Source: Hyaloraphidium curvatum SAG 235-1 (taxonomy: Eukaryota; Fungi; Monoblepharomycota). Taken from it: a stretch of DNA of 64,000 nucleotides. Position 1 is the stretch's first letter, and each line of letters starts with the position of its first letter. Below, piece by piece: positions 13,363 through 43,884 of the stretch. Where the stretch lies: the NCBI GenBank assembly GCA_025558095.1, contig JAIVFI010000002.1, forward strand, positions 310,001 through 374,000, written 5' to 3'. The notes beneath the pieces are model-generated. The model was not told the origin of the DNA, ran no database searches, and saw nothing but the letters and a program-made list of their open reading frames with translations. A program made the translations under genes and the position numbers.

Positions 13363-14366
13363 CTATTGTTCAATGCCGTCCGGCGGGATCAGCAGCTCAT
13401 CCAGCACGTAATCCCACGGGAATGCCTGCAGCAGCTCCCACTGATCCGGCATGCCCGCCACGGGCGGCCCCCGGCCCCCCATCCGCACCGCCTCCCCCAG
13501 GTCCCGTGCCGCAGCCTCGCCCTCCCTCCCCGTGCTCGCGTAGTAGTCCGCGTACTTGTCCCCTTCGACCACGACCTCCTTGTACTTCACAAACCGAACC
13601 GGGATCCCCAGTATTCGGCGATCACGATCCCGTGCAGCGATGCCGACGCCACTGCCCCGCACCCAGCAATGTCCAGCACAACGTCCCGCCACGGCCTTCG
13701 CGGGTCAACGAACCGCACCGACGCGTTATTGGCCCGCTCCTGCAACAGCTGCACTTCACCCAGCATCAGGTCCGCGGTCCACCCTCCATGCGGCACCGCG
13801 CACCACCCCTCTCTCCTGTTCCCCCGCAAGCCCGGATCCAGCAGCGGCAGCAGCACCGCTGGATCCCCGTATACCGCCGGCTCTGTCCTGTTGCACGTCT
13901 CCCTGAGCCATTTCCTCGTCAGCGGACCCCGCACAGCAAACACCTTTGCCCCCGCCGGGGGGCACTGCGATGGCCTCGGGTCGACAAACGCCCCCGCGCC
14001 CCACACCGCATCCCCGCTTTTCACGCGGGAAAAAACCGTCCCGACCGCCCACAGGCACTTTTCCCGGTGCGCCGGGTGCGAAACGTCCGTGGCGGCGGCG
14101 TCGACCACGCGCACCCCGGGCGCCAGCCGCGCGAGCAGCAGCGAGACGACGGCCGGGCCCAGTTCGTCGCCGAAATTCCTCCCTTGCCACGGCGGGCTGG
14201 ACGGCGGGAGCCAGCGGCACACGCGCAGGTTGCCCCGCGCCGCCCCGGCGCGTCTTAGGGAGGGCGGGAGGGCGAATGAGGGGCCCCGGGCGGGCAACCG
14301 GGCGGAGAGAAAGAGGAATAACGCGGGTAGGAGGAGGAAGAGCGCCCGGGGGGCGATTCGGGGCAT
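13363..14366 (-). CDS. Polysaccharide pyruvyl transferase (ExoV-like), type II membrane; 1-nt frameshift near 13612
   Basis: NFGDELG, VWGAG, AVRGPLT, VYGDPAVLLP and SASLHGIVIAE, continuing in another frame as LGIP..KYADYYASTGR. Confidence 0.8.
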
Positions 14367-14498
14367 GGTTGAGCGGGCGGGATTCCCGCATGTCGCCGAC
14401 TGCCCAAAGGAAACAACGCGCCCCAAAGCGAACAGTGCCGCGTTGCTCGAGGTCAACGCAAATACCTCCTGAGCTGCGTACTGGCGATAGACTCGCCC

Positions 14499-15590
14499 TC
14501 ACCGCTCCGTTGTGTCGTTCCCGCCGTCCAGGGCAGCTAGCAATAATGAGCGGACCGCCCTGCTGATCCGCTCCACCGCCCTGCTCCGCACCTTTCCCCT
14601 TTCCGTCTCACTCATCGCGTCGATTGCATCCAGCAGGGCGCTTGCCGGCTCGAATTTGCGCGCGAACAGCGCCCCCGACGCCAACGCCCGATCCAGCTGC
14701 TCCCTCGTCCGAAGCCACTTGACGTGCGACTCGCCCTCGACCGGCTGGTCGTACCTCAAGCAATCCCCCGCCACGCTCCCCGCCATCTCCCTTCCCTCTT
14801 CCGTCCAGGAAAAGAACATCTGCCACACGCTTTCCTCCGCCGCCTCGACGCTCCCGAGCGCCGCCAGCACCCTCCTCATGCCGGCGCTCCGCAGCGCCGC
14901 CTCGCACGCCACGCGCGAGAGCACCACCCATGTCGGCCCGTGCGGCAGAGGCCTATCCGGCTGCACCCAGGACCACGTGGCTCCTTGTTTCGCCAATGTC
15001 CGGTCGTGGCCCCATAGCGCCGGGTCCAGCGCCGGGCGGCGCCACCGCTCCGTCCCTCTGCCCCAGTGCGCTACGAAGCTCAAATGCTGACCAGCCTGCC
15101 GATTCGCGGCTTCCAGCACGTCCTGCAGCTCCCCAGGTGGCAGGAGGGGGTAGTCCGACCCCGACAAGTTGATGAATGACGCCCACCGCCCTCCCGGCAG
15201 GGCAAGCAGCTCCTCCACCGCGTCCAGGGTGTTTAGCGCGAGCGTGATGCCCGCGTAGGTGAGCTTCCGCGGCCGCATCACCCGCACGTTGTCCCTGTAC
15301 GGCGGCCGCGCGACCAGGTCCCGCAGCCGCTCCGCCTCGGGCGAGTCCGCCCACCGCGCGTCCACGTGCACCGCGAACGCGTTGTCGGGGTGCCATAGCG
15401 CTTTCAGCAGCCTTCCTGCGCCGGGAAGCGTGGCGTTGGTGAGCTGCAGCAGGAAGGCGAGCCCGCGAATGCGCGCCGGCGGTGGTCTGGCGGGCGGCGC
15501 AGCGGGGGACAGCAACAAGAGCGGCGCGGCGGAGAGGACGGCGAGGGAGCACAGCAGGACGAGAGGCTTGAGGGCGCCGCGGAGGCGCAT
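14499..15590 (-). CDS. GT14 (core-2/I-branching/xylosyltransferase-like) glycosyltransferase
   Basis: Signal anchor, LAFLL..RLLKALWHPDNAFAVHVDA, FINLSGSDYPL, GPTWVVLSR, LFARKF. Confidence 0.9.
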   Translation of the reverse strand: MRLRGALKPLVLLCSLAVLSAAPLLLLSPAAPPARPPPARIRGLAFLLQLTNATLPGAGRLLKALWHPDNAFAVHVDARWADSPEAERLRDLVARPPYRDNVRVMRPRKLTYAGITLALNTLDAVEELLALPGGRWASFINLSGSDYPLLPPGELQDVLEAANRQAGQHLSFVAHWGRGTERWRRPALDPALWGHDRTLAKQGATWSWVQPDRPLPHGPTWVVLSRVACEAALRSAGMRRVLAALGSVEAAEESVWQMFFSWTEEGREMAGSVAGDCLRYDQPVEGESHVKWLRTREQLDRALASGALFARKFEPASALLDAIDAMSETERGKVRSRAVERISRAVRSLLLAALDGGNDTTER

Positions 15591-15728
15591 CGGTTCCGCG
15601 GGTTGCGTACTGGCTGATCCTGTGCCCCGGCCCTGGCCTCGGCCCGAAGCCGCGTTTGGCCTTGGTTTTTGTTGGTTTGGCCGCGTCCCCCCAACCAAGG
15701 GTACGACGCGTTCCATGGATTGCGACCA

Positions 15729-17438
15729 ATGGCGCGAGCCCGGGCGCTGCCCGTGCTTCTTGCAGCAGCGTCAGCGGCAGCGGCAGCATTGCTTGCGGCG
15801 GCGGCCGCGTGGCTGCACGATTCCGAGCGCGGCGTCCGCGCTCCCGGCCCCGCGGCCGCTGCGCACCCCACCGCGGCCACCGCTGCCTGGGCGCACGGGC
15901 CGCTCCCGGACGACCTCTCCGCCGCCGACGTGGCCTCCGCACTCCCCCCGACTGCGGTGGACCTGGCCTTCTGCGCGATCGTGCGCAACGAGGACGACGC
16001 GCTGGAAGAGTGGCTCTCGTACCACCTGGCCCACGGCGCGGGCCTCTTCCACCTGTACCACCTCGACGACCACGACGCCAGAAACCGGTGGCGCGACGTC
16101 CTCTGGCCCTTCGTCGCCCGTGGGGTCGTCAGGATGCACGCCCAGCGGGTGCGATACGCGGGCCAGTTGGCTAACCGGCAGTCGGCGTCGCTGAAGGCGT
16201 GCCTCAGAGAGCTCGCCGGTCGCGCGCGCTGGATCGCCTTTTTGGACGTGGACGAGTTCCTGGTGCCCCCGCCCGGCCGCACCGTCCTCGAAGAACTCGC
16301 TCGGTTCGACGACAAACCAGGCCTCTTTCTCCCCTGGCGCATTCTCGGCCCAGGCCCGAACTCGTCCGAGCCCGACGTCGAACACCTACCTCTGCACCGC
16401 GTGCTTAACGCCGCAGACGACTCGGGCACGAACATGCTCAACCTCCTGGGCAAGGGCAAGCTCCTCCTCCGCGCAGCGCACCCGGGCGCCGCGAGGGCCT
16501 GCGAGCACTTCATGAACTTGAAACCGGGCCACTCTGCTTCCCTGACGATAAACTATGTGCACAACTGCCTTGCGTGGTCAGGCATGCTCCCGGTCGACCC
16601 GCAAGGCCGCGAGGCCGGCGATCCCCTCATGGCCCCCATCCCGATCCGCAAAACTGGACTCAAATTGTTCCACTACTTTGCCCGCTCCTGCGCCGACTTC
16701 GAAGCCAGGCGCCCAACCCGCTTAAGCTACTACCGCACCCTGCACGGCACGGACCCCGAACCCGGCGGTTGGTTCCGTGGGCGCACGGGGGACCGATTGG
16801 GCAACACGACCGCCGAACGATGCGCGGCACTGCGGCGGCATTTCTCCGAGGAGGAGCGTGGTGCTCTCGCGCACCTGGGTCTGCTGGCACAGGAACGGGC
16901 GCGGGTGAGCTCGGCGCCGGTGCCTCCACTCCTGCCGCGGGCAGAGTGCGGTCGGTGCGATCCCAAGGCTACGTGCGTGGACCTGCTGGGGACGGCCGAG
17001 TGCGTTTGCGAAGCGCGCTACGAGGGCAACGGGCGGTTCTGCGGGGATATGGTGTGGGCGGGCAACGTGCTGCCCAAGATAGGGCACTGGGAAAAGGAAT
17101 CGGCAAGGGGCCCCGAGGGGACGCTTCACGTGCCATCGGGGGAAGGCTGGAACGGGACGGTGGTTCTAGATTTCGGGGAGGCGCGTTTGGCGAGGGCGGT
17201 AAGGCTGTACTTGCAGGACGGGGCATGCGGGGTGACGGATGTTGCGGTCAGAGGGCTCAGTTTGCGGGAGTGGGAAGAGCTGGCCGTGCCCGGTGCTGAC
17301 AGGGGGAAGGTGTGCGTGCCCAATGGGGAGATCGAGGTCGAAGTGCGGCTGCTGGCGCCAGCCGCGGTTGCGCGGGTGCGGGTCGGCGTGCGGCAAGGCA
17401 GCGTGCTGGCTGCGGCGGGGCTCCTGGTCGAGGCGTGA
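15729..17438 (+). CDS. GT92/GT2-like glycosyltransferase with EGF-like and C-terminal beta-sandwich domains
   Basis: CAIVRNEDDALEEWLSYH, WIAFLDVDEFL, LFHYFARS; EGF-like CGRCDPKATCVDLLGTAECVCEARYEGNGRFC. Confidence 0.85.
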   Translation: MARARALPVLLAAASAAAAALLAAAAAWLHDSERGVRAPGPAAAAHPTAATAAWAHGPLPDDLSAADVASALPPTAVDLAFCAIVRNEDDALEEWLSYHLAHGAGLFHLYHLDDHDARNRWRDVLWPFVARGVVRMHAQRVRYAGQLANRQSASLKACLRELAGRARWIAFLDVDEFLVPPPGRTVLEELARFDDKPGLFLPWRILGPGPNSSEPDVEHLPLHRVLNAADDSGTNMLNLLGKGKLLLRAAHPGAARACEHFMNLKPGHSASLTINYVHNCLAWSGMLPVDPQGREAGDPLMAPIPIRKTGLKLFHYFARSCADFEARRPTRLSYYRTLHGTDPEPGGWFRGRTGDRLGNTTAERCAALRRHFSEEERGALAHLGLLAQERARVSSAPVPPLLPRAECGRCDPKATCVDLLGTAECVCEARYEGNGRFCGDMVWAGNVLPKIGHWEKESARGPEGTLHVPSGEGWNGTVVLDFGEARLARAVRLYLQDGACGVTDVAVRGLSLREWEELAVPGADRGKVCVPNGEIEVEVRLLAPAAVARVRVGVRQGSVLAAAGLLVEA

Positions 17439-17886: not shown

Positions 17887-18401
17887 CCGTGGCGCCTGGA
17901 GCGACGCACGGAATCGAAGGCCTGCCCATGTACTGGGGTGGGGGACGGGCTGCGTGTCGCAGAGTCTGCCGCTCGCGGGGCCGCGCCTTTGGCGTTCGGG
18001 TCGTACAATTTCTGCAAGGAGCCGCAGGCCGACGAGCGAGTGGCGGCGCTCCGCTGGCCCTATTGTTGAATGCCCTCCGGCGGGATCAGCAGCTCATCCA
18101 GCACATAATCGCACGGGAATGGCCGCAGCAGCTCCCACTGATCCGGCATGGCCGCCACGGGCGGCTCCCGGCCCCCCATCTGCACCGCCTCCCCAAGATC
18201 CCGTGCCGCTGCCTCGCCCTCCCTCCCCGTGCTCGCGTAGTAGTCCGCGTACTTGTCCCCTTCGACCGCAACCTCCTTGTACTTCACAAACCGAACCGGG
18301 ATCCCCAGTGGATTCGGCGATCACGATCCCGTGCAGCGATGCCGACGCCACTGCCCCGCACCCTGCAATGTCCAGCACAACGTCCCGCCACGGCCTTCGC
18401 G
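17887..18401 (-). pseudogene. Direct duplicate of 13198-13702 (3' part of the pyruvyl transferase and its 3' flank)
   Basis: Near-identical sequence from ccgtgg(a/c)gcctggagcgacgcacggaatcgaagg to cacggccttcgcg. The 5' two-thirds of the gene is missing. Confidence 0.9.
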
Positions 18402-18578: not shown

Positions 18579-19811
18579 GCGCCATGCACTTCGAGTATCG
18601 ACCGTCTAGTGATATCCGTATCTGTACAAAAAGGATATCATCCCGCGCCGGCCGGTGGCACGTAGCCTCGCTTCCGGCCGCGAATACATAAAATAGATAG
18701 GCGTTGACGCATGTTGCACATGAAGGTAGCACGGAGTCCGTCCAGGTCTTCGTCATCGGGGTACTTGGTGTATGCGATCTTCTTCATGAGGCGTTCGGCA
18801 TCATCGTGGAATGCACAGTACGATTCCATGGCGAACGGTACGAGGCGGCGTGGTCCATTCAAAGGCAATACCCACCGGGCCTTGTAGAAGTCTACCTTAG
18901 CCTTGACGGCTTGATCGGCGGCAAAGAGACGCTCCGAGCGGCATCGGGGTTCGGCGGTTCCGTTGGGATGCGTGACAGTGACGTCGACCACGATAGTTTC
19001 GTTCGTGAGCTCGTTGCGGACCAGGAGATCGCCACCGTTTTGCTCCGGGTCCTGCGAAGCTCCAGCGCGCCCGGACGCATGCGGTGTTGCAGGCGGGGCG
19101 TTCGGGACGCGCTGGATCCCTGCCGCGGCGAGGTTTGGCTCCGAGTCCACGATGAGCGGGCCGCGTGGTTGGCTTTCGATGATCGTCTTGAGACCGTCGC
19201 GCAGCAGGTTGTGGCGGCGGGGGGCTCCTTCTCGACTGCAGCGGCCACTGCTGCACGACTGGGCATGGGCGACGGCATGCTGCCCGACCTCGAGGTTGCA
19301 TGCGCTGCACGTGCCGTCTGGTGCGGTTCCTGGGGGCGGTAGGCCAAGGAGGTGGGCCGAGCCGACGCGATACTGTGTGTCGTGGCAATGCAGGGTTCGG
19401 ATGCCGGGCGAGGCGCCGAGGAAGGCCGTGGCGTGGTTGGATCGGGCCGACTGGAGCGCCGTTTGGTACTGCAGGTCGCCGGCCGCACCTGCCGCGGCAA
19501 CGAGGGCGTCGGATTCGCGCTGTTGGAGGATGTTGCACAGCTCGTGTTGGAGCTTCCGGGGTGGGAAGTCGCGGGCCGCCGCGTCCGAGGCTTTCCCTCC
19601 TGAGCTGAAGTGCTTCTCCATACGCTGGGCAAGGGCGCAAAAAGAGCGGTCGGCGGGGATCTTGTCCATGATCGAGCCCAGGCCGAGGGCGGGCTGCTTC
19701 AGGTAGAGGATGGTCTCCAGCAGTTCCGGGCAACACTCATCCAGGTCAAGATCCACATCGACGTCGTGGAGGGGGACGACGCGGCATACAAGGTGTGCGC
19801 CATGCACTTCG
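18579..19811 (-). mobile_element. 5'-truncated non-LTR retrotransposon, restriction-like endonuclease (CRE/SLACS-like) type, with 15-bp TSD
   Basis: ORF 18638-19807 has CSAC..HAQSC knuckle, RHN, D..VDVTVTHP, KxxxY and PFAMES motifs. GCGCCATGCACTTCG occurs at both 18579-18593 and 19797-19811. Confidence 0.88.
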
Positions 19812-19855
19812 GCCCGAGAGGACTCTTGAGGGATCAGCTATGTCCATGAACTGCG

Positions 19856-22800
19856 ATGCGACTCACCCTGCGAAGGGTGGTGCGGACGCTGGTAGCGGCA
19901 ATCTTTGCGGCGGCGCTTGTGAAGCCGTGGAACCCGAGCGGTCGGGGTTCTGCGCCGGCGCGGCCGGAGCGAGAGGCGGACCCCTGCGCGGAGCGGGCCG
20001 GGCTCGACGGCGCGACGCTGCTTCCTCTCAGCGCGTTGACGCGTCTACGAATTGCGGCAGGCTGGAAGTGCGGAGGCGGTTCGACATTTCCCCTCCGCGA
20101 GAGCGTGCGGCTGTTTGCGGGGGGGCTGCTTGGGGACGCCAAAGTCAGGGCCGACCACCGACTGCTCCTCTCGCCGGTGCCTCTGGCGTTCTCGGCGGTG
20201 TTTGACGCGGAGGTGTCGGCCGAAGCGGTGTGCCGGGCACAGGCGGCGGCTGCCTGGACGGCAGGGGAGCACAATGGGGATCGCTCCGACGTTTCGGGCG
20301 ACGCCGGCGTCGCAGGCCTCGCAGCTGCGCTCTGCGGCCCTTACGCGGGGCGGACACCACCACCGAACTGGATCTTTAAGGGCAGCGGCGGCGTGCTCTC
20401 CTTGAGGCGGCGGTGCGGTGCCCCCGTCGACCCCACCCTTGCCGCCGTCCTCGGCGTCCCTGGCTTCGCCACACCAAACGCCACCGAGCTCTCCTGCGGC
20501 GTACCGATGCCCTATGATGCCGTGGTCGCCCGCCTCACGGCCAACATCGCCGCCCTGATGGACACCGACCACCCTCTCCCGTCCGGCATGGCGCGGCTGC
20601 ACCACCCCGGCCCCACCCGCGACGCCATCCTGCGGCAGGTCCCCGTACCCGCGACCGACCCCACGGTGTTCATCCAGCACGAGCATGGGAGGGAGCTGGC
20701 GGACGCCGCGGGTACGGGGTACGCCGCGGGCATCCTAACGGCGCTGTTTGCGGGGCAGCCGCACAACCTGCTCGGCGTGCTGACGGCGTACAACGTTGTG
20801 GTGTCGCCGAATGGGCTGCTGCAGGCTGTCGGGCCCGCGCTCGAGCGGGAAAGGGCGCGGAACGGGGGCGATCGCCCAAAGCCATCTGATGCCGCCCAAG
20901 CATATGAGCAGCTCCTGGAGGATCTCTACGAACCCGAGCCGCCGGCGACTGCCGAGCTCCGCGCCCAACGCATGGCGCAGCACGTCGAAAACAGCCTCGG
21001 CGGCCACGACGCTGCACTTGCACTCCGCCGGCGCTCCCCACAGGTTCGTCACGAGCACTACTGGCCGGCATATGCCGGCAAGAACCTCACGGAGGTGCCA
21101 TACGCTGATTCCGGTGGTGGATCCGTGTTCTACGTCACCCAGCTTGTTATGCCCGTCGAGGGAGTCGACCTCTCGGAGCCGCACGCCGCCGTCATGGACT
21201 GGGACCGGAACCGGACGTCGGGAGGGAAGGTGCCGCGGCTGCCGGTCTACGACGAGGTCTTTGTCGTCGTTCCGGCAGCGGACAACTACTACTGGTTCTC
21301 GACGGACTTTGTCGGGAGGACGGCGCCGCTGCGCGCATACTTCGCCGATCACCCGCGCGCCGCGGTCCACGTGGCTCCGCACTTTCACCGCAGATGGACC
21401 TCTATTGATGCTCCCGGGTTCGTCAAAGAGTGGCTCCGCTGGCTGGGCATCGAGGACCGGCTCGTCACGGGCCGCGTGGCTGCCCGCATCGCCCACGCGC
21501 TCGACAACCACATCGCCGGCCCACGCACGCACCCTTTGCAGCTTCTCGCCCTCCGCTCCGCGATGCGCAGCCTTGCCCCCGAGGCCTTTGCCGCCGCCGA
21601 CCGCGAGAACCGCGCCCGCCGCGTGCTCGTTGTCGACAGGTCGAACGCCACTGCTCGCCGGGAAAACCCAGACGACCGTGCGCACCTCGTCCGCGAGCTC
21701 GCCTCCCGCGGCCTCGAAGCACTTTCCTTCAACACTACCGAGCCCCTTTCTGAGGCTCTCTTCAAATGGGCATCTGTCGGCGCCGCCGTCGGCCCGCACA
21801 GCTCGACATTCACCAACGCGCTCGCAATGCAGCCCGGCAGCACGCTGGCGGAGCTGGTGCCTGCGGGGCACGCGGCACAGGGGTGGTACAGCATGCTGCT
21901 GGCACACTTCGGCGGGCTGCGGTATCACCATGTTCTAGTGCCGGGGGATCTGTCGACGGGGATCAGGGGGGGTGTGGAGGAGCTCGTCTGGGCGCTGTGC
22001 GGGGATCATGCGGGGAGATTGGCGGGGTGCAATTCCACGGCGCCGCCCGCGGACGTGCTGAATGGGCTGGTGGCAAGGAAGCCGGGAGTGGGGCCCAGGG
22101 TCGAGACGTGCCTCCCGGACATCGCTGTGGCCAAGCCGAAGCTGGAGGCGTCGGAGCCCATCCACGCTCTGCGGCCTCTCCCGGACGCCAACCTCACCCT
22201 CGCCACGCGCAACGGCACGGTGACCAACCTCGTCCCCTGGATCTCACTCGACTCGGCGCTTCCGCTCTCCAAGGTGCGCGGGATCACCCTCATGTTCGCG
22301 ACCGCGGGTTTCCATCCCAGTGCGGTGTCCCGGCTCCCCTTCCATCGCCGGCTGATTCGTGCTCTCGAGAGACGGGGTCTGCTCCCCGTAGCGGTTCCGA
22401 TCGGGCTTCTCGAAAGGCTTGCATACCAGAGTTTTGCCGACTACTGCGGCAATGAGGACCTGCTCGCGACCGTCGCCGTGCTCGCGATGGTTTTGGACGC
22501 CGTGGAAAAGGCGGGGGGCGATCCGCGGGTGCCGGTGACGACTTTCGGCCTGTCGTCCGGGTCGACGTTTACTGGGATCGTGGCGACGCGGGTGCGGTTA
22601 GCGGGATCGCTGGTGCAACTGAACATGCCGGAGGCGGTGCTGGACCATCTTGTGGAAGGCGGGAAAGGGAGGATCAGGCGGGACGTCGCGTGCGGGAGGG
22701 TGCTGACCGGGGTGATGAGGGATGCTGTGGGAGGGGGCGTGGTGGTGCGGAGGCAGAGGCTCCCGGGGGAGGACGAGGTGCCGGAGCTGCTGCGGCCCGA

Positions 22801-32671: not shown

Positions 32672-33584
32672 TGGCTACGCGGTCGCCAGGCGCTCCCGAT
32701 CCCACGGGGAAAAGGCGACTCCCTGCGGCATTCTGGGCCGGCCCTGGATTGAAGCGGGTTCTGCACCCCCATCCCTGCATGCCTTGAGGGTATTCGTGAA
32801 ACAATACCCGAAAGGTAGGATAGGGGGCAAATCAGGGGGCAATACAGGTTCATCGAGTTCAAGGGAACGCGTGTTCGCGGGAAAGCTCGGAGGGAGGCAT
32901 TGAGGATCAGCATGGCCAGCTACCGAGCGTTCGTCAGGCCTTGAGGCCACGGAAGTACCTTGGACTTGCAATCGTTGCATCCACGGGAACGACTGATGTT
33001 GCCTCCTGGGGTTCTTGAGCAACTCGCCGAGGTCTGGGGCCGGCTCGTGTTTGTGGACGACAGAGGGCAGGACTGCCTGATCGTTTCGTGTCCCGGATCC
33101 AACCATGTCACGAACAATTTCGAACAAGCGGTTCCACGGGCCGAGCCGGCCATCATCGTTTGCCTCTCCCGAACCTGATAGCATTCATCTGCAAGGCGCA
33201 TAGGGTAGTTCGCATCTGATGGCTGTGGCACTTAGACGCTTCCCTCGTCGTACTGTAGCTGCCGCCTTTGGCGAACATCATTCTAGGACCCAATGTGCTA
33301 TTTGCTCAGTATCTACCAATCTACCTAGCTCAATTCTCTCCCATGCCAATCGTCCTGATCCGCTGATCCGCTGTATCGCGTCCCGCTTTGCGAATTCGAC
33401 TTTCACGAAGGCTTGGGCTTCAATGGCGGCCGCTGTGGTGCAGTGGCCAATTGAGTAGGCCGACTATATTTCTATAGATGAGCGGGCGGTATTTTTCGCC
33501 TGTGCGGCCGCCAAAGCCCTTCAACAGCAAACAATGGAAACCAGCTAGCACACAAAACCGGCCGTGCGAATGGGCGCATACAGC

Positions 33585-34637
33585 ATGGGCCCCGCTGTCG
33601 AGCTCGTCCCCGGCCGCTGGGTTGGCCCCGGCCGGCCGACGTTCTTCATCGCCGAGGCAGGGCTCAACCACAACGGCCGGCTCGACGCCGCGCTGCGGCT
33701 CGTCGACGCGGCCAAGGCGGCCGGCGCCGACGCCGTCAAGTTTCAGAAGCGCACGCCGGCTTCCATGCTGACGCGCGCGGCGCTCGCGGCGCCATACGCC
33801 GGCCCACACTCGTTTGGCGCCACGTACGGCGAGCATCGCGCCGCGCTCGAGCTGTCCGAGGCCGACTGGGACGCACTGGCCGCGCACGCCGCCCGCGCTG
33901 GCATCGCGCTGGCCGGCTCGGCGTGGGACGAGGCTTCCGCCGACCTGCTGGTGCACCTGGGCGCGCCGTTCCTCAAGTTGCCTTCGGCGGACCTGACAAA
34001 CTTCCCGCTCATGGCACACGCCGCGCGCTCGGGCCGGCCGCTGGTGCTCTCCACCGGCATGGCTGACATGGCGCTGGTCCGCCGCGCCGTCGCACACGCC
34101 AGCGCCTTTACGACACGGCTGGTCCTGCTGCATTGCACCTCGACGTACCCCGCACCGCCCGAGGCGTGCAACCTCCGCGCGATCCATGCGCTTGCTACCA
34201 CTTTCCCGGACGTCGTCGTGGGCTACTCGGGCCACGAGCAGGGCACCGCCATCGCCTGCGCAGCCGCCGCCATCGGTGCCGCCGTGGTTGAGAAGCATCT
34301 GACTCTGGATCGTCAAATGAAGGGACCTGACCATGCGGCATCCCTGGAACCGGAAGAGTTTGCTGATATGGTCCGGCGGGTGCGCGAAGCCGAGAGGGCC
34401 ATGGGCGACGGCATCAAGCGGCTCATGCCTGGGGAGGATGCGGTGAGGGCCAAGCTGGCCAAGTCGCTCGTTGCCGCGCATGACATACCGCGGGGCACGG
34501 TCCTCACGCCGGAAATGCTTGTCGCCAAGGGGCCCGGCACGGGCATTGCGGTTTGCGACGCGGAGCTGGTCCTGGGAAGGATGGTACTGCGCGACATCGC
34601 AGCCGACACACTGCTGGACCCGACCATGTTTGGGTGA
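33585..34637 (+). CDS. NANS: Sialic acid (Neu5Ac/Kdn-9-phosphate) synthase, NeuB/NANS family, with SAF domain
   Basis: ELVPGRWVG, IAEAGLNHNG, GADAVKFQK, PY..HSFGATYGEH, STGM, LHCTSTYP, GYSGHE, EKHLTLD, GPDHAASLEP, KSLVA. Alternative ATG at 33570. Confidence 0.96.
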   Translation: MGPAVELVPGRWVGPGRPTFFIAEAGLNHNGRLDAALRLVDAAKAAGADAVKFQKRTPASMLTRAALAAPYAGPHSFGATYGEHRAALELSEADWDALAAHAARAGIALAGSAWDEASADLLVHLGAPFLKLPSADLTNFPLMAHAARSGRPLVLSTGMADMALVRRAVAHASAFTTRLVLLHCTSTYPAPPEACNLRAIHALATTFPDVVVGYSGHEQGTAIACAAAAIGAAVVEKHLTLDRQMKGPDHAASLEPEEFADMVRRVREAERAMGDGIKRLMPGEDAVRAKLAKSLVAAHDIPRGTVLTPEMLVAKGPGTGIAVCDAELVLGRMVLRDIAADTLLDPTMFG

Positions 34638-34728: not shown

Positions 34729-35724
34729 TCAAGGCGGCCCAATCTCTTCTTGACTGCCAGTTCCTGCATCCCATCGAACCCGGAGCGGGCAGCAAGAGGT
34801 CCTCCTCTTCAAGTACCCGCACGTGCCATTGCCGTCCACGAGCATTTTCTCGTAGTAGGCTTTGTCCTTCTTGAAGGCCGTTACCGAGGTCCGCGCCAGC
34901 TTGCGCTCGGCCTCCTCCCGCGATTTCCACATGTAGTGGTAGAGGGAACCGGCGCTGTGGGCAGGGTTGGAGAGGAAGTAGAACGCTGGGTGTTCGCGAC
35001 TGCTCGGGTGCACGGCATCCTCGCCAGCGGCATTTGCCGGCGGCAGGGAAGTCCCGTTTGCAATGATAGGATGGTGCGCGGTCGTCATGCCCCGGATTGC
35101 TGAGCACCGCACAAGGGCTTTGAACGCTGCTGACCTCGGATGGGTGCGCGGTAGGCACGATGCGTAGTTGGCCAAAACGCCGCCGGCAGGACGTTTTTGG
35201 TGGTCTTTCCCGTCAAAGATGACCCAGTTGAGGTAGACCGCGGGCCGGCCATCGAACCGCGGTTGCGAGAGGAAGGCCGGCAGCGAGGGCCGCGCCCCTG
35301 GTAGTACCGGGAACTCGTCGACGTCAAAGAACGCCATCCAGCCATTTAAAGGGCAGAGCTGGATGCAGCGATGGTAGGCGTCCCCCTGCGGCGAACGGGC
35401 GAAGGGGACAGGGCCGTGCACACCTCCTGCCGGGAACACGTCTACGTCTGGAACGTCCAGGAAAGCCGGCCGCCGCGTGGAATGGGGGGCGATGCCGTCG
35501 TCGTACACCAAGAAGCGCGAGACGCCGAGCAGGCGGTGGTAGTTGAGCCACTCGGGCAGGTCATCTGCCGCGTCCTTCGCAATGATGCACGCGTGCACGG
35601 GCGGGCTACCGACCTCACTGCCGCTTCGGACAGGACCGCGGAGTCCGTTGGTCAGCTGAAGTAGTGAAAGTGCGGCGAGCGCGGCGCCGGCAAGCACAGC
35701 AACGCGGCAGCGCAGGAGCAACAT
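34729..35724 (-). CDS. GT92/GT2-like glycosyltransferase
   Basis: CIIAKDAADDLPEWLNYHRLLGVSRFLVYDD, WMAFFDVDEF, LNWVIF, YHYMWKSREE. Confidence 0.85.
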   Translation of the reverse strand: MLLLRCRVAVLAGAALAALSLLQLTNGLRGPVRSGSEVGSPPVHACIIAKDAADDLPEWLNYHRLLGVSRFLVYDDGIAPHSTRRPAFLDVPDVDVFPAGGVHGPVPFARSPQGDAYHRCIQLCPLNGWMAFFDVDEFPVLPGARPSLPAFLSQPRFDGRPAVYLNWVIFDGKDHQKRPAGGVLANYASCLPRTHPRSAAFKALVRCSAIRGMTTAHHPIIANGTSLPPANAAGEDAVHPSSREHPAFYFLSNPAHSAGSLYHYMWKSREEAERKLARTSVTAFKKDKAYYEKMLVDGNGTCGYLKRRTSCCPLRVRWDAGTGSQEEIGPP

Positions 35725-35761: not shown

Positions 35762-36469
35762 ATGCCCCGTGCAGCGTGCATCGCCGTGGTCCCCGCCCGC
35801 GGCGGGTCCAAGGGCATCCCGCGAAAAAATCTCGCCGACTTTCTCGGCGGACCGCTATTCCTCTGGCAGGCGCGCGCGTGCGCGGACTCCGGCGTTTTCG
35901 ACGCAGTGGTGGTCAGCTCCGACGATTGTGAAGTACTGGACGCCGCGCGTGCGGCCGGGTTCCTCGCACACGAACGGTCTGCCGAGGCGTCTTCCGACGG
36001 GGCGTCTTCGGAAACGGCGGTGGCGGAGGCCGCCGCCTGGTACCGGTCGCTGGGCCGCCCCGTCGACGTTGTATGCCTCGCACAGCCGACGTCCCCTCTG
36101 ACCGCCTCAGAGGACTACGCCGCCGCATGGACGGCCTTTGAAGACGCGGGAGCGGACTCGCTCGTCACTGTCTGCCGAAGAAAGGTGTTTTTGTGGCGGC
36201 AAGCAGATGAGGACGAGAGGCTCGCCCAGCCGGCAAACTACGACCCGCGCCGGAGGCCGCGCAGGCAGGATTGGGACGGGGTGCTGGTTGAGAACGGCGC
36301 CTTCTACTTCACGCGGAGCTCGTTGTTCGACGAGCTGGGTTGCAGGCTCGGCGGCCGCACAGTGGCCTACCAGATGGAAGAGTGGAAGGCGACGGAGATT
36401 GACACGCCCGAGGACCTGGAGGTGTGTAGGGCGATCGGGCTGGCGAGAGGACTGAAGTGGGAAGCGTAG
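35762..36469 (+). CDS. CMAS: CMP-sialic acid synthetase (acylneuraminate cytidylyltransferase), single domain
   Basis: VPARGGSKGIPRKN, VVSSD, QPTSP, RPRRQDWDG.LVENGAFY, EIDTPED. Confidence 0.95.
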   Translation: MPRAACIAVVPARGGSKGIPRKNLADFLGGPLFLWQARACADSGVFDAVVVSSDDCEVLDAARAAGFLAHERSAEASSDGASSETAVAEAAAWYRSLGRPVDVVCLAQPTSPLTASEDYAAAWTAFEDAGADSLVTVCRRKVFLWRQADEDERLAQPANYDPRRRPRRQDWDGVLVENGAFYFTRSSLFDELGCRLGGRTVAYQMEEWKATEIDTPEDLEVCRAIGLARGLKWEA

Positions 36470-36534: not shown

Positions 36535-37578
36535 TCAGAGCTCCTCCACATCAGACTTGCTCCCGTCCGAAGCGGACTCCGCGACGAGCCAGCGCAAGGT
36601 CGTATGCAACCGAGGCCTAGGCTGTATCCCTCCTTCCGCCTGCGCCGGCCAAGGCTCGGTACCACCAACCGAGTAGAGGTACGACGCGACGCCGTTGGCC
36701 GCGCATCCCAGGACGAAACCGGGGCCCAAGGCCCGCCCAAACCAAACCCAGCTGGCAACTCCCGAGATCAGCAGGCTCCCTGCGGCCGCGAACGCCTTCC
36801 ACACGTTGTCCCCCAGCCGCAAGACGGCCGCGGTCAGCTGCCCCAGCACGGCTAGACAGAGCACCAGGAGCCACGCCGCGCGGTTGAATCCCGCCACGGG
36901 GACGTGCGACATGCTGAGGAGCGGGAGCCAGGTCAACAGGGTGCCGAGAGCGTAGAGCTGTGCGTTCTGCGCATGCGGGCTCTGTGGGGAGTGTTTAAGC
37001 AGCAGCTCGTTGTACACGCCTGCGGCGGCCGACACGATGATCGAGGCTGCCAGCGCGGCCCACCCGGCGGGGGACGCCGAAAATGGGGCGCGAGCTGGGT
37101 GGGAGGCGATCGCGGCAGCGGCGGGGCCAATCGCGCCTTCGCTATGGGCAAGCGCGGTGCCGACACACAGCAGCACCAAGCCGCCCAGCTGGCGGCGCGA
37201 AAAGTCCCGGCCCGCCGCGGCCATCAGGCTCGCGGCTAGCGGCACCTTGAGACCACCGAGCAGCTGCACCGTGGCGGGGTCGGCGGCGCGTGCTGCAACA
37301 AATAAGAGATTGTTGTTGAGCGCGTAGGCCGCGGCCAGCATCGCGGTGCGCGCGATACCGGCCGCTGTGGGCACGTCGGACGGCAAAGGCCCGGCCGCGG
37401 CAAGCTGGCCCAGGGACAGCGCGAGTTTGGCCGCCTCGGCCAACGCGGGCACGGCGGCGGGCGCGAAGTCATAGCCGCCCTTGGCGTTCCGCGCCAGCGC
37501 CGCGAGCACCGGTCGGGCCGCGTCGGCAACCGCCAGCGACGCGACCGCGGGCACCGCTAGCCACTGGCGCGCGCGCAT
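36535..37578 (-). CDS. SLC35A-family nucleotide-sugar transporter (candidate CMP-Sia transporter)
   Basis: AEAAKL, YALNNNLLF, DPATVQLL..LKVP, AGVYNELLLK, QNAQLY, DNVWKAFA; multiple TM segments. Confidence 0.9.
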   Translation of the reverse strand: MRARQWLAVPAVASLAVADAARPVLAALARNAKGGYDFAPAAVPALAEAAKLALSLGQLAAAGPLPSDVPTAAGIARTAMLAAAYALNNNLLFVAARAADPATVQLLGGLKVPLAASLMAAAGRDFSRRQLGGLVLLCVGTALAHSEGAIGPAAAAIASHPARAPFSASPAGWAALAASIIVSAAAGVYNELLLKHSPQSPHAQNAQLYALGTLLTWLPLLSMSHVPVAGFNRAAWLLVLCLAVLGQLTAAVLRLGDNVWKAFAAAGSLLISGVASWVWFGRALGPGFVLGCAANGVASYLYSVGGTEPWPAQAEGGIQPRPRLHTTLRWLVAESASDGSKSDVEEL

Positions 37579-37747: not shown

Positions 37748-38201
37748 ATGAACGCCTCCCCTGTTCCGGGCCGCCGGCTCGCTATCCTCTCGTGGGCCAC
37801 GATACTACTGGCGGCTCTTGCGTGGCTACGGGCCCATCGCCAGTCGCGCGACCCGGCGGCGGCGGCTGCGGCCCGCGCGGCACGGGCTTATGCGGCGCTG
37901 GGCGCGCTGTCCGAGCCCGCGTGGCGGGGGGTGCATGAACCAGCACTGGACGCACCAGGCCGCATTTTGCGGCCTGGACCTCGGGATCCGCTACGGCTAC
38001 GTGCTGCGAACGGACCAGCTGGCGGAGCTGCCCGCGCTGCTGGACAGCCTTGGCGTCAGGGGGCCGGACCGTGGGAAAGAAGAGCCGGGGAACATTTTCG
38101 GGTACGGCGCCAACGGTATCGCCGAACTGAGGCCAGAGGAGCACGATCTGTTGAGGGAGGTGTATGGCGTGGACATGGCGCTATGGCAAGCGGTGCGCTG
38201 A
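37748..38201 (+). pseudogene. Internally deleted carbohydrate sulfotransferase remnant
   Basis: A signal-anchor segment joins out of frame to NQHWTHQAAFC..RYGYV..LLREVYGVDMALW, the C-terminus of CHST-type enzymes. PAPS-binding motifs are absent. Confidence 0.55.
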
Positions 38202-38229: not shown

Positions 38230-39181
38230 GGGGCTCGTCCCTCCATGCTCTGCCGACCCCATCCAGTCCATCACCAGCGGGCAGCACCGCACTACGTGGT
38301 CCCGCAGATAGGTGCAACTCTCGTTCGTCCAGCCCACAGCTTCTGGTAACTACCCGGCGGCCGTGGGCGTACTAGGGGTCCGGGGTGTTGACCATGGCAA
38401 GAGCCTCCTCCCTGGATTTGTACATGTAGTGGAACAGCGCCGCAGGGCCATCGTGGGAGGGGTTGTCCAGCCACTGACTGGGGCATGCCGCACACGTGCC
38501 AGGCCTGCGCGCCCTCTCGTTCACCTCGAACGAGCCCGCAGCCAGCTTTGCCTTGTGCGCGGTGCGCATGCCGAGCAGGTCGCGGCACTGCGCTAAGGTC
38601 TTTGCTCCCGACCGGGTCGTGCCGAACGACCGCGGCACGCAAGTTGAATAGCTCGCCAGCGTGCCCTGTGCTGGCCTGGTCTCGTACTCCCTGCCCACCA
38701 GGACGACCCAGTTCAGCAGCACCGCCGGGGCGTTCCGGAATCCGTCCAAGAACCGCGGCAGCCAGGGGCGCTCCGTCCGCAGCACAACGAACTCGTCGAC
38801 GTCCAAAAGGCCCATCCAGCCGCCCGCGGGACAGCGTGCCGCGCATTCGGCGTAGGCGCGGTGCTGCACCGAATCGGCGAACGCGACGTCGCCGCGCGGG
38901 CCGCGGGGCGGCACGGGCCGCACGTCGACATCCGGCGCGGCGTGCGGGAACGGAGGGCGCGAACCGTCGTCGAACACGAGGAAGCGGGAGACGCCAATGG
39001 AGCGGTGGTAGTCGAGCCACTCGGCGGCGTCGGCGTTGGCGTCGCGCACGAGGAGGCACATCCACACGGGCGGGCCCGCGGGCGCCTGCGGCGCCCACGA
39101 CAGCCGCAAAGCAACGGTGGCGCTCGAAATGACACACAGCAGTGCACGACGGCGAGGCCCGCGAGCGACCTCCACTACCAT
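38230..39181 (-). pseudogene. GT92-like paralogue of 34729-35724 with disrupted C-terminus
   Basis: EWLDYHRSIGVSRFLVFDD, LLDVDEF, FHYMYKSREE, then a stop at 38372. The homologous tail (YQKL; NESCTYLR..CCPL) continues in other frames. Confidence 0.75.
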
Positions 39182-39238
39182 TGTTTAAATATTGAATGTG
39201 GGTTCCCGGGGTATGCATTGCTCGGCGCCGCCTTCCGG

Positions 39239-40401
39239 ATGCCTCTGCTGGTGCGCGCCGCAGCGATGGCGGCGCTCTTCGGGCTGAGCTGGGCGCTCTG
39301 GGCCGGCGGCGGCGGGCGCGCCTCGGGGCTGCGCGTGCACGCAGCGGGCAACCTCGGCGACGAGATGGAGACGACGCCGCTGCTACGAGCGCTGGCCGCG
39401 TGGGGCGTCGCCATGGACGTGTTCCTCGCGCCGTGGCTGGCGCGGGAGGACCGGCTGGGTCCCCACGTGCTGCGGACTTCGCGCCACTGGCGCCTGACGC
39501 GTGCATCTCGGCGTTGCCGCTGGCTGACGCTTCCGGCTACGACGCCGTGATAGAGGCGCCGAGGCCCAAGGTGCTGCACGATTCGCTGCCCGCCTCGCCG
39601 CCGCATTTCTGCACGCCGCTCGTGCTGTTCAGCATCGCCATCGCAAGCCAGCAGGTGCCAGTGCCCCCCTGCGTCGCGCTCGCGGTGTTCCGCGAGCCCG
39701 TTTCGCAGAGGAGGTTCCTCGCTGCCGCAAAGGCCGCGGGCAGGACGCCGCCGCCCACCTTGATGAGCGGCGACCTGTCCCACATCCTCGAGGTGTCGCA
39801 GCCCCTGCTCGTGGCATGGAGGGCACAGCACCGCGCCGCTCTGGAGGCCGCCGCCGTTCCGAAGGACTGGGTCCTGCTCTTTTCCCGCTCCAACAACTTT
39901 GGGCGCCGTGTCTCGGTGGTCCGCAACGACACCGTTTCCGTGCGGCACGTGAATGGCACCGTCGAGCACCACCCCGTCGCCTCGGTCGTCTTTGCCAGCA
40001 CCTCGGTCGTCGGGATGGAGGGCGACGCCGCGGTTTTCGCCTTGCTCGCCACCCGGGGCGTGCCCAGGGGCAGGCTCGTCACCTGCACAGGGATCGAGCA
40101 GCTCTGGGCGCTCATCAGCCTGGCCCCGGCCGTTTACACGGACCGCTACCATGCAGGTGTCGCCTCCCACCGGCTCGGCGTGCCCGTGCGGGTCCTCGTA
40201 CACTTGGCCGAGAGGACAAAGATGAAGGGGTTGCAAGAGATACTGGTACATCCTACTGAGACAGTGCGGAAGTGGAACGCTGAGGCGCTGGATGCGCTTA
40301 AGGGGTTCCTGGAGGCCCTGCCGAGACCGGGGTTGGGGAGGCGGGCGCCACCACCTTGCCCGGGGAGGCCAGAGGGCCTGCCTTCAGGTTTCATGCCATG
40401 A
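39239..40401 (+). CDS. Polysaccharide pyruvyl transferase-like protein; frame change near 39500
   Basis: GNLGDEM in the first frame; FREPVS, GDLSH and TDRYHAGVASHRLGVP in the second. The frames join by a frameshift or by a possible 53-nt intron 39501-39553. Confidence 0.7.
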
Positions 40402-40426
40402 TGGGTCATGAAGAGATCAATGCCCT

Positions 40427-42151
40427 TTATAGGCGCCCGGTCGTTGTTGCTATGGTCGCTCGGCCCTCCATGCGGGCCCCCGCGTGCTCCCGCAGGATCC
40501 CCCGCTCCCTCCACCCGACCAGGCTCCGCGCCAGCGCCACCAGCTCCTCCTTCCTCGCGTCCGAAGCAAACGGGCACGCCCGCAGGAGCTGGTACAGGTC
40601 TACCGCGACGTTGCCCATCCACAGCGCGGGCGGCACGGGGAACGGCCCCGCAGCCGGGATAGGAATGGGCACTACATCGGGCAGTCCGACAGAGGACAGG
40701 TAGTCTCGGAACTTGAACCCGTCCCCACGGAGGCGGCGGCCCCCCGAGAAAGAGACCCAGGAGACGGGTATGCCGTAGGCGTGTGCAGCGATGAGGCCGT
40801 GCAAGGAGGAGGTGAGGAGATGCGAGCAGGTGTGCAGGGCATCTGGGAACGCTAGCGGTTCCGACTGGATGTCCAGTACGCGCACCGGCCAGCGCGCCCC
40901 GTCCGTGACGAAGTCGGGGAAGGGCTCAACGCGCTGCTCACGAAAATGCTGAACTAAGCACAGAAATGCAGGCCGGTGGTCCGGGCGATGGAAAAGCGGG
41001 AGGAGCAGTACTGGGTCGCCGTAGACGGTAACATTAATGCCGCCCTCGCGGCAGATGCGGCCGGCGGTCAGGGGCCCGCGGACCGCGTGCACTGCCCGGG
41101 GAGCGCGAAATGAGGTCGTGGAGGTCGAGTTGATAAAGCCATAGCCATAGACCTCGTCGCGCGGGCCGACGTCCTCGAGTCCACTGCCGATGAACCTGTA
41201 CACGGGGCCATCACGCGATGCGACGGGGTCCTTGTGATGCAGGGCGGGACGGTCCGAGAGCAGCGAAGCGAGCACAGGGTTCAGGCGGTCACCCCAGTTG
41301 AGGGCAACGCCCCCGGAGATGGGAAATGCGACGAGCACGGGTACGGCGGTTAGGACATAGTCCCGCGGCCGGTTTTTCCAAGGGGAGGGATCAGGCGCCG
41401 GCGGCAGCGCCACCTCGTCAGGGACCGCGAAAGGCCTCGTGCACATCGGGAAAGGCATGTACAGCGAGCCGTTGCCGGCGGTACGGGCGCGCTCGTGCCA
41501 ATCCTTCCAAGCGGCCCCGTATGCCGCTGCTACCAGTGCGGCGGCGGGGTGGGGCGGGGGCGGCGCGGCGCACTGGCGGCCGGGGAGCTCCAGAACGGCC
41601 CCGGGGCCAAAGGCCAGTGCGAGCCTGGCGACATATTCAGCGGCAGCGTCCGCTGGCGGTGCAACCGAGTCGAAGAAGCCCACGGCGTCGATGGCCTCGC
41701 GCCGCACCAGCACCGCGGCGGGGTCCGCACACTCCGGGGCCAGCGCGGCGACGGCGGCCGGGTGCGCGCTCAGGCCGTCCCACAGCGCCGCAGCGTTTGC
41801 TTCGGTGTGCGCGGCAAAGAGGTACGCGTCCGCCACGACCAGCTTCGCCGCGGCGTTCCAGAGCGCCGCGGGGGCGTCCCCGGGCGCGGCGCCGCACACG
41901 ACCAGGTCGGCCGCCGCACCGACGACGGCGTCGCACTCAGCGGCCGCCGCCACGCAGCGCGTGCCGCGCGGGCAGCCGCCCGCCGCCGCCGCCACTGCGA
42001 GCACGCCCGGCAGGCCGCTTCCCGCGGCGGGGGCGGGGCCGGAAGCGGGCACGCCGCGCACGCCGGAATCGCGGAACAGCGCGGCCGCCGCCGCAAGCAA
42101 TGCTGCCGCCGCTCCCGCGAGAAGCACGCGCAGCGCCCGGGCTTGCGCCAT
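40427..42151 (-). CDS. Pyruvyl transferase (ExoV-like) with N-terminal degenerate GT2-like region
   Basis: NWGDRLNP, IGSGL, AVRGPLT, YGDPVLLLP, TSSLHGLIAAHAYGIP, FKFRDY; upstream LVRREAIDAVGFFD. Confidence 0.85.
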   Translation of the reverse strand: MAQARALRVLLAGAAAALLAAAAALFRDSGVRGVPASGPAPAAGSGLPGVLAVAAAAGGCPRGTRCVAAAAECDAVVGAAADLVVCGAAPGDAPAALWNAAAKLVVADAYLFAAHTEANAAALWDGLSAHPAAVAALAPECADPAAVLVRREAIDAVGFFDSVAPPADAAAEYVARLALAFGPGAVLELPGRQCAAPPPPHPAAALVAAAYGAAWKDWHERARTAGNGSLYMPFPMCTRPFAVPDEVALPPAPDPSPWKNRPRDYVLTAVPVLVAFPISGGVALNWGDRLNPVLASLLSDRPALHHKDPVASRDGPVYRFIGSGLEDVGPRDEVYGYGFINSTSTTSFRAPRAVHAVRGPLTAGRICREGGINVTVYGDPVLLLPLFHRPDHRPAFLCLVQHFREQRVEPFPDFVTDGARWPVRVLDIQSEPLAFPDALHTCSHLLTSSLHGLIAAHAYGIPVSWVSFSGGRRLRGDGFKFRDYLSSVGLPDVVPIPIPAAGPFPVPPALWMGNVAVDLYQLLRACPFASDARKEELVALARSLVGWRERGILREHAGARMEGRATIATTTGRL

Positions 42152-42669
42152 CGGCTGCAATCCATGAACACTCGTCCGAGCTAGACACGCTTCGATTGGG
42201 ACGCACCCACGAACCGCCGACGCTGTCTGACAGAAGTCGACATTGTCTGTTTCCCCCGAGGCATCCAACACGCCGCCTGCCGAAGTCGTGGCCATTCATT
42301 GCATGCAAGCCAAATTTGTCTCCGAAAGCCGCGGAGAGGAACGCAGCAGATGTGGATCGAGAGGCCGGTAGCACAATCGATCCTCCCCATCCAGAACCGA
42401 CTGATTCTCTGGCATTCAGCTTGCCGCCGTCCTATAGCCGACTTAGTCTGGTTCAGAGCGCATTCTAGTCGCAGCTTAGCTGCTCCGGAAGGTGTGAGCT
42501 CTTCCGCGGTGAGTCAGCCGCCGCAGCGGGGAAACACACCCGGGAGGCAGCAAGGCGGTCGCTACTTATGGTAGACCGAGTGCCGTCATGCGGCAGAATC
42601 CAGTCCGTGCTACAGAAGGTGCGGCAGCAGACACGAAGTGATCGGGAGCCATCGGGAGTGAACGTAGGA

Positions 42670-43884
42670 ATGCGCGCTATTGCCGCAGGCATCGCGCTTG
42701 CGGCCCTCCTGAGCGCCGGGCGCGCGTACGCCATGCGACAGCCTTTTGCATGGGTGCACGTCCCGGCGGCGGGCGCGGCCGCGGACGGCGAGGACGTCGA
42801 GGACGCGCGGGGCGGCGCGCTTTCGGCGCTGCTGCTCCCGACACGTTCGGAGCTGCGTGCGGCATCGCGGCTGCGCGACCGTGCGGAACGGGGCCGATCG
42901 CCGCTGTTGGCCGCGGCCGCCGCGCTGCCGGGCGGAATGCTGGCGCTGGCCCCCGCCGACGCGCCTCCCGGGTTCCCCCTGGGATGTGCCTCGGTGCGAG
43001 CCCTGGCCGACGTGGTCGGCCAGTTCTCCTCTCGCATTATTGCTCCGGACGCGTTTTTTCTGCTTGCCGCGGACCCCGACCTTGCGGACCTCGCCGTGCG
43101 GTTCGCGTTGGCAGCTGCTGCCAGGGGCCCGTGCCCCGCGATCCGCGCGCCCGCTGTCCCGCAGCTGCTGCTCCTGCCGCCACCGTCGTCGGCGCTGTTG
43201 CCCGTGCCGCGCTTCGCATTTCCCGGCGCGCTCGAAACCGGCAACGCAGAGACGGGCTACAAGCTCCAGAGGGCGACGAATTGGGCCGTCTGCTCGCGGC
43301 ACGTCCGCCACGCGGTCCTGGAGCTCTGGGACCTAGCTCTGTGGTTCTCAGACCGCGGGGCCGCCAACGAGGAAATGGCTGTGGCTGGCGTGGCTTCGCA
43401 AGACGGCTGCCTGGACCCCGTGCGGGCCGCCGCCGAGATCGGTGAGCGTGGCCTGCTGCGGCCCCTGTTCCCCGTGCTCGGTACAGCTGCCGACAAACGC
43501 GCCGGAATGTGGCCGCGGCTGGCATCGTGTCTGCGCCGGGACAGGTCCGCCGAGCAGCTGCGCGAGCTGTTGGAGACGCCCGGAGCCCGTGCCGTCATCG
43601 TGGACCCGGAACCGCCCCTCTTCTGCAATTTTTACATCGGCCAGATGGGCCACGACGGCCTTTGGTCGCTGCCATTCCCAGCCGAGCGCGGGTCCGACCT
43701 GCACCCGGCGGAGCTATGGTCACCAGGCGGCTACCACGTCGGGACGTTGCTCTCCCCCGGACCGCAGGCTCAGATCGTCTGGGCGCTCCCGGACCCGCGG
43801 CCCTGGACTGGCTACGGCGGGATGGGGGACCCAGACGAGTGGGCGGACGAGGTCTGGTGGGCAGTAGCGAGGTTGTTCCAATAG
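42670..43884 (+). CDS. Hypothetical secretory-pathway protein
   Basis: Hydrophobic N-terminus and a long intronless ORF in the island's style. No family recognised. Confidence 0.55.
   Translation: MRAIAAGIALAALLSAGRAYAMRQPFAWVHVPAAGAAADGEDVEDARGGALSALLLPTRSELRAASRLRDRAERGRSPLLAAAAALPGGMLALAPADAPPGFPLGCASVRALADVVGQFSSRIIAPDAFFLLAADPDLADLAVRFALAAAARGPCPAIRAPAVPQLLLLPPPSSALLPVPRFAFPGALETGNAETGYKLQRATNWAVCSRHVRHAVLELWDLALWFSDRGAANEEMAVAGVASQDGCLDPVRAAAEIGERGLLRPLFPVLGTAADKRAGMWPRLASCLRRDRSAEQLRELLETPGARAVIVDPEPPLFCNFYIGQMGHDGLWSLPFPAERGSDLHPAELWSPGGYHVGTLLSPGPQAQIVWALPDPRPWTGYGGMGDPDEWADEVWWAVARLFQ

Follow-up and report, generated by a model that had tools for sequence, protein, structure and literature searches.

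The stretch of 64,000 nucleotides analyzed here (hereafter, the window) comes from the fungus Hyaloraphidium curvatum SAG 235-1 and starts at position 310001 of a 1.3-Mb contig (JAIVFI010000002.1, denoted C2) that belongs to a GC-rich assembly of 31.9 Mb in 55 contigs; coordinates prefixed with C2 or another contig label refer to that contig, and those without a prefix to the window. Between a Zn2Cys6 gene and a YIF1 gene, positions 13363–43884 are occupied by an island with 17 intact genes plus three broken copies and a fragment of a retrotransposon, with a coding share of about 77%, which bears out the claim of a first-pass annotation that about 20 glycan-related genes or remnants are clustered here. 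Matches to glycan families in Pfam were obtained for 12 of these genes: three GT92-like, three pyruvyltransferase, one each of GT14 and GT61, a weak GT2, NeuB with SAF, CMAS, and a nucleotide-sugar transporter. Within 5.7 kb, the island contains the single-copy genes for a NANS-type nonulosonate synthase, a CMP-nonulosonate synthetase (CMAS) and a candidate GT29-like transferase together with the transporter. Such a clustered, complete-looking nonulosonate route with a divergent transferase is apparently new for a fungus, a group that had been taken to lack it, and a literature search found no publication on this locus. The left border and the genes of the island are the following.

10126–13047, plus strand: Zn2Cys6 transcription factor, left border, one intron in the gene model (PF00172, PF04082); a tie to the island is unproven.
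13363–14366, minus strand: polysaccharide pyruvyltransferase 1 (PF04230), probable pseudogene with a frameshift near 13612, where one base is missing compared to the intact, 94% identical paralog at C2:294 kb.
14499–15590, minus strand: GT14 (core-2/I-branching family) with a type II anchor (PF02485, E 4e-19); paralog at C2:297 kb with 91% protein identity.
15729–17438, plus strand: GT92-like glycosyltransferase with an EGF domain (PF13704).
17887–18401, minus strand: 3' remnant of pyruvyltransferase 1, 94% identical.
18641–19837, minus strand: 5'-truncated fragment of a retrotransposon without long terminal repeats (non-LTR).
19856–23671, plus strand: GT61-containing protein of 1271 amino acids (GT61, E 9e-5, over the cut-off in one search); paralogs at window 1–2490 (85%) and C2:302–306 kb (77%).
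23815–24912, minus strand: anchored protein without a family match; paralog near C2:1217 kb.
25074–26261, plus strand: sulfotransferase-like protein with four paralogs, recognized only by 5'-phosphosulfate-binding (5'-PSB) and 3'-phosphate-binding (3'-PB) motifs, without a match to a hidden Markov model (HMM).
26357–27529, minus strand: FkbM-like methyltransferase with six paralogs, recognized by motifs only, without an HMM match.
27662–30523, plus strand: anchored multi-domain glycosyltransferase of 953 amino acids (weak GT2 match, PF13641, E 0.006).
30561–31541, minus strand: anchored protein without a family match (DUF7796 at E 0.1).
31919–32671, plus strand: candidate GT29-like CMP-nonulosonate (sialyl/Kdn) transferase, single copy, type II anchor (motifs, the homolog P0256, Atlas, homolog fold, context).
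33570–34637, plus strand: NANS/Kdn-9-P-synthase-type NeuB and SAF protein, sole genome copy, no anchor (PF03102, E 8e-79; PF08666).
34729–35724, minus strand: GT92-like glycosyltransferase (Pfam).
35762–36469, plus strand: CMAS, sole genome copy (CTP_transf_3; best PDB match PpNeuA).
36535–37578, minus strand: SLC35A-type nucleotide-sugar transporter, single exon, candidate CMP-nonulosonate importer (PF04142, E 4e-31).
37748–38201, plus strand: broken remnant with an anchor followed, in a different frame, by a sulfotransferase-like C-terminus (by resemblance only).
38372–39181, minus strand: GT92-like glycosyltransferase (Pfam), 45% identical to the product of the 34729 gene.
39239–40401, plus strand: pyruvyltransferase 2 with a predicted 53-nt intron (Pfam, gene HMM and a joint in run X1).
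40427–42151, minus strand: pyruvyltransferase 3 (PF04230, E 2e-9).
42670–43884, plus strand: anchored or secreted protein without a family match (from the sequence).

The synthase combines a NeuB TIM barrel with a SAF domain and contains the catalytic motifs; it scores below the NeuB and PseI equivalog cut-offs, its tree includes no characterized NANS, and the nearest bacteria are those assigned to the NANS group in a survey of eukaryotic sialylation (PMC5811610), in which fungi yielded isolated synthases only and not a single GT29. In the PDB, CMAS matches PpNeuA with an E value of 4e-49 and mammalian-type CMAS (1qwj) with 2e-41, compared to 7e-6 or weaker for KdsB; these comparisons place it nearer the CMP-Neu/Kdn synthetases than the CMP-Kdo enzymes. 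The transporter belongs to the PF04142 family, and its position makes it a candidate CMP-nonulosonate importer. An N-terminal hydrophobic stretch, the likely membrane anchor, is present in every island gene product except NANS and CMAS, the two being left without anchors as the separation of cytosol and Golgi requires. The anionic glycan decoration proposed in the first-pass annotation is supported, in a Golgi-type form. A genome search with a positive control detected no sialidase, which favors synthesis over scavenging.

The product is probably Kdn, the simplest one by analogy with Prymnesium, with N-acetylneuraminic acid (Neu5Ac) as an alternative. The Kdn route of P. parvum uses mannose 6-phosphate (Man-6-P) and has no recognizable phosphatase (PMC6200933). 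The island shares with the CMP-Kdn pathway of P. parvum and Bacteroides thetaiotaomicron an apparent NANS-type 9-phosphate synthase, a CMAS nearest to PpNeuA and no dedicated phosphatase found, but differs in its fungal host and in the clustering with a transporter and a transferase, and Man-6-P is the predicted substrate here. Compared to the NANS-CMAS-SLC35A1-GT29 pathway (PMC5811610), candidates for all four steps are in place with the expected cytosol/Golgi topology, whereas here the genes are clustered and the transferase falls below Pfam detection.

The protein encoded at 31919 contains, as read by eye, stretches similar to the sialylmotifs L, S and VS, in this order and ending in HxxxxE, which are conserved with P0256, the one full-length relative detected among 1.8 billion proteins (E 2e-5); word search, PDB profile search, and viral and metagenome scans with the 31919 protein all produced no match. 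P0256 scores 0.92 to GT29-bearing Atlas clusters, and for its structural model, which is of low confidence, ST8SiaIII ranks first (Z 6.1 over 164 residues), while the top 23 include five further CMP-nonulosonate transferases: ST6Gal1, ST3Gal, ST6GalNAc2, Cst-I and Maf. Homologs neighbor a cytidylyltransferase gene on two further contigs, L077 and L027: P0256 adjoins the start of a cytidylyltransferase, and on L027, a split homolog is located directly upstream of CMAS. The sialylmotifs, the fold match of the homolog and the homologs next to CMP-synthetases are modest singly and concordant, marking this gene as a candidate GT29-like nonulosonate transferase. Separately, a green-alga contig encompasses a weak Cst-I/GT42-like gene (L158:14862–15752, E 0.08) 4 kb from NANS.

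The closest relatives of the two enzymes are encoded on eukaryotic contigs, with 57% identity for NANS and 65–66% for CMAS. In trees from quick searches, supported by the Shimodaira–Hasegawa-like approximate likelihood ratio test (SH-aLRT), the fungal NANS joins a green-alga-like contig group (SH-aLRT 98) as the sister of the algal group rather than one of its members, and the fungal CMAS joins the same contig group (SH-aLRT 99). The NANS kin have a GC content of 46–52%, which argues that composition did not cause the grouping. One group of kin contigs carries, in variable order, genes for NANS, CMAS, a transporter, a HAD phosphatase, an acetyltransferase and methyltransferases, and one contig has a GT29. 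A sister contig encodes TAF1 and a nuclear plastid uL18, which points to a green-lineage alga, and L027 (with TAF8) and L028 look chlorophyte, judging from intron style and repeat proteins. Contigs L002 and L023–L026, from a eukaryote, with 51% GC and a variable NANS-CMAS-HAD-acetyltransferase-transporter-(GT29) cluster, resemble the small outlier chromosome (SOC) of Mamiellales. Transfer from algae would be the simplest reading of these relationships, with its direction unproven.

The first-pass annotation had suggested horizontal acquisition from algae or giant viruses, and it is the alga-linked history of the sialic-acid core that both trees retain. The approximately unbiased (AU) test rejects the grouping of NANS with giant viruses (p 1.5e-5) as well as that of NANS with FCB bacteria and of CMAS with pelagophytes. 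A giant virus with a fibril-glycosylation cluster, of the kind already known (PMC10117803), could have delivered the island or left it as a remnant, given that NANS with 47–48% identity is found on giant-virus contigs and that the Atlas neighbors of the 31919 transferase are mostly viral clusters. We nevertheless find this scenario highly improbable: it is largely refuted for NANS by the AU test, the island open reading frames (ORFs) include no viral hallmark gene, viral matches of the GT92-like proteins reach only 27%, and GC content at third codon positions (GC3) is host-like (0.85 versus 0.89 in the host). It is possible that a virus acted merely as a vector between alga and fungus.

That the closest kin are alga-like could also betray algal contamination or misassembly, which we consider barely credible. 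The Zn2Cys6 and fungal transcription factor domains at 10126–13047 identify the window as fungal, and the island lies inside C2 between this gene and YIF1, with continuous GC (0.62–0.73 over the island, not below the flanks). Furthermore, paralogs 77–94% identical to island genes are located 20–30 kb away, relatives are found on many contigs, and the contigs of run X1 carry the core without a single differing letter.

The island had been described as essentially intronless, and it is intron-poor rather than intron-free. Introns were counted with a self-trained gene HMM, the splice models serving for intron counting only and exons being searched and aligned separately; the background of about 190 kb consists of loci chosen near glycan genes. 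The island has 0.21 introns per kb of coding sequence; the corresponding values are 1.19 for the non-glycan background and 0.44 for the other glycan islands. Single-exon models make up 13 of 18 in the island versus 15 of 58 in the background (p about 1e-6). Most of the five intron calls in the island look spurious or span a frameshift. Counts of GTRMGT donors do not separate the island from its flanks, and an adh_short control, biased to the best scores, indicates that intron-free domains are not rare in this genome. Among the other well-scoring nucleotide-sugar transporter genes, three of four are split; the island copy is not.

Contigs of one run, X1, were examined, an evidence that is silent on expression levels. 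One contig spans 33927–37858 without a joint, whereas a second leaps from 39197 to 39554, and the 356 skipped nucleotides start with GT and end with AG. Because of this GT-AG joint, X1 is probably RNA, and the core is probably transcribed unspliced. On the strength of this one joint, the acceptor of pyruvyltransferase 2 at 39553 is real; the predicted 53-nt intron, 39501–39553, uses the same acceptor and would link the anchor of the protein to its catalytic part. The X1 joint itself (39198–39553) cuts out the anchor-coding part, with 39198 as a possible alternative donor.

The gene families of the island are not confined to it. Genome-wide, there are 16 GT92-like, 23 GT61, 12 GT14, 11 pyruvyltransferase and at least 19 FkbM copies, spread over many contigs and mostly in long single ORFs. 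The island nevertheless stands out, with 13 of the 104 genome-wide matches to its families in 30.5 kb, or 426 versus 3.3 per Mb, a contrast inflated by the choice of families from the island itself; the densest other 30.5-kb stretch has three matches. Weaker intron-poor glycan islands are located at C14:630–648 kb, C28:596–605 kb and C35:470–485 kb. Import of the island as one block is not supported, given the genome-wide spread of the families, a local segmental duplicate described below and a GC3 near that of the host. Because the families are spread genome-wide and weaker islands exist elsewhere, the island is the densest spot of a genome-wide, alga-like surface-glycan toolkit, not a single imported capsule locus. 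As a side observation, C2:512000–625000 holds three nucleotide-sugar transporters, two genes of the UDP-GlcNAc 2-epimerase family in an apparent inverted duplicate, and FkbM and GT61 genes; this is probably another island and could supply N-acetylmannosamine (ManNAc).

Signs of rapid turnover, also predicted in the first-pass annotation, abound: the frameshift, the remnants and the 77–94% identical paralogs. GT14 and GT61 have paralogs at C2:297–312 kb, and the island is in part the product of a local segmental duplication. The glycan block extends leftward past 13363 through the paralogous segment at C2:294–312 kb. The block C2:294000–312500 includes the intact pyruvyltransferase, a retroelement remnant, GT14, two GT61 copies and two genes with Zn-cluster-like N-termini. 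The ORF at 18641–19837, which by motif we take to be a non-LTR element of the REL-endonuclease type, belongs to a repeated family with 30 genome matches, one of them 91–93% identical within a 1112-residue frame. Remnants resembling this retroelement type occur in two of the C14, C28 and C35 islands.

Given the three broken copies, the retroelement, the duplicated block and the retroelement remnants elsewhere, the island might be a hypervariable "parking zone", in which functional unity is limited to the four genes of the nonulosonate module, the other transferases having accumulated by duplication and retroelement activity to serve different glycans. In line with this possibility, C2 holds 30% of the island-family matches in 4% of the genome, most of them at 210–625 kb, and outside the island, unrelated families occur within 20 kb of each other 24 times versus 7.6 expected by chance (about threefold). 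We regard this possibility as doubtful, however, because GT92-like genes lie in among the NANS, CMAS and transporter genes, and tight head-to-head packing (gaps of 37–518 bp) and strand alternation extend along the whole island. The strand switches at 15 of the 18 neighbor pairs, and the gaps between divergent genes have a median of only 138 bp, compared to 434 bp, an arrangement that suggests shared promoters.

Our preferred reading, which we consider reasonably probable, is that the island brings together, in close packing, Golgi enzymes that add negative charge to a wall or mucilage glycan, and that it is built around a nonulosonate module that shares recent ancestry with green-alga-like eukaryotes. 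The cytosolic synthase would condense phosphoenolpyruvate and Man-6-P into Kdn-9-P (or, alternatively, use ManNAc-6-P to make Neu5Ac-9-P), an unlinked phosphatase would remove the 9-phosphate, and CMAS would make the CMP-sugar in the cytosol. The adjacent transporter would then move the CMP-sugar into the Golgi, where the GT29-like protein would transfer the sugar onto an acceptor built by the GT14, GT61, GT92 and GT2 enzymes, with pyruvyl-, sulfo- and methyltransferases modifying the same or neighboring glycans to yield a polyanionic wall or mucilage glycan. The module would have been gained by an old transfer into the fungus, and the surrounding genes assembled by duplication and relocation from the intron-poor toolkit. 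Pfam supports the GT14, GT61, three GT92-like and three pyruvyltransferase assignments of the first-pass annotation; of its GT2/GT64-like label, only GT2 has a (weak) match, and the sulfotransferase (25074) and methyltransferase (26357) labels derive from short motifs in the two sequences, with no match in Pfam, NCBIfam, PHROGs or PDB.

Several observations weigh against this reading. No phosphatase was found in the cluster and none of the KdsC type in the genome, and three genes of the UDP-GlcNAc 2-epimerase family elsewhere on C2 leave room for Neu5Ac as the product. The GT29 Pfam model (PF00777) matches neither the 31919 gene nor the genome in a search whose control was also silent; the fold evidence comes from the model of the homolog P0256 (pLDDT 55, Z below 8), as the single-sequence model of the 31919 protein was unusable, and Foldseek with the P0256 model gave no match. 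The kin contigs were assigned to hosts from neighboring genes, the trees contained no animal, amoebozoan or other fungal NANS, and the AU test fails to reject both a grouping of NANS with GC-rich Chloroflexota/Rokubacteria (p 0.13) and a monophyletic algal CMAS that excludes the fungal one (p 0.14). The last result, that CMAS need not nest among algae, and the sister position of NANS would also fit vertical inheritance of NANS, CMAS, transporter and transferase from a eukaryotic ancestor with loss in other fungi, especially as the pathway has been mapped to the last eukaryotic common ancestor (PMC5811610). We deem such a history unlikely, considering the 65% identity of CMAS to alga-like contigs, the lack of introns, the gene neighborhood shared with the kin, and the absence of any named animal or fungal protein among the best 120 NANS and CMAS matches.

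The rest of the window includes a 289-nt unit in an array of 3.4 copies, 99% identical (56325–57355), and an ORF of about 1000 codons (46796–50105), the C-terminal part of which resembles, by eye, TnpB/Fanzor-type nucleases, without a Pfam match, in a stretch of lower GC at 44–52 kb. One or more long, coiled-coil-rich ORFs at 60123–62653, also without a Pfam match, are possibly part of a mobile element.

Bacterial capsule and O-antigen loci carry neu genes beside transferases and pyruvyltransferases. Like them, the island combines the synthesis and activation of a sugar with its transfer and with anionic decoration; unlike them, it is not an operon but has alternating strands, encodes enzymes of the type II Golgi kind together with a transporter of the SLC35 family, and contains no recognizable Wzx/Wzy or Kps export gene, so that its description as a capsule-locus analogue applies to function only. 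The fibril-glycosylation clusters of Megavirinae (PMC10117803) are likewise intron-poor, with unusual sugars and pyruvylation, whereas the island is cellular and its NANS does not group with the viral copies. The SOC of Mamiellales (Bathycoccus, Micromonas, Ostreococcus) concentrates glycosyltransferase and methyltransferase genes that are poor in introns, turn over fast and in many cases lack orthologs, with a proposed role in the cell surface and virus resistance (PMC3491373). The island is similarly intron-poor, rich in glycosyl- and methyltransferases and fast in turnover, but occupies an internal 30 kb of a fungal 1.3-Mb contig, shows no drop in GC, and is one of several islands instead of a dedicated chromosome. 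A bolder and more tentative proposal is that a complete clustered Golgi pathway from green algae makes Kdn- or sialic-acid-capped fungal glycans via a new Pfam-silent GT29-like family that travels with CMAS, and that the island, co-regulated as a whole, alters the surface coat in defense against viruses or grazers, as proposed for the algal outlier chromosomes.

Whether any fungus synthesizes and transfers sialic acids of its own has long been asked, and the locus names four genes for assay in a cultured organism. It also points to a divergent transferase family missed by Pfam and suggests small clusters as the form in which eukaryotic nonulosonate genes move. The alga-like toolkit resides in a fungus that was first described as a colorless green alga (PMC6899921).

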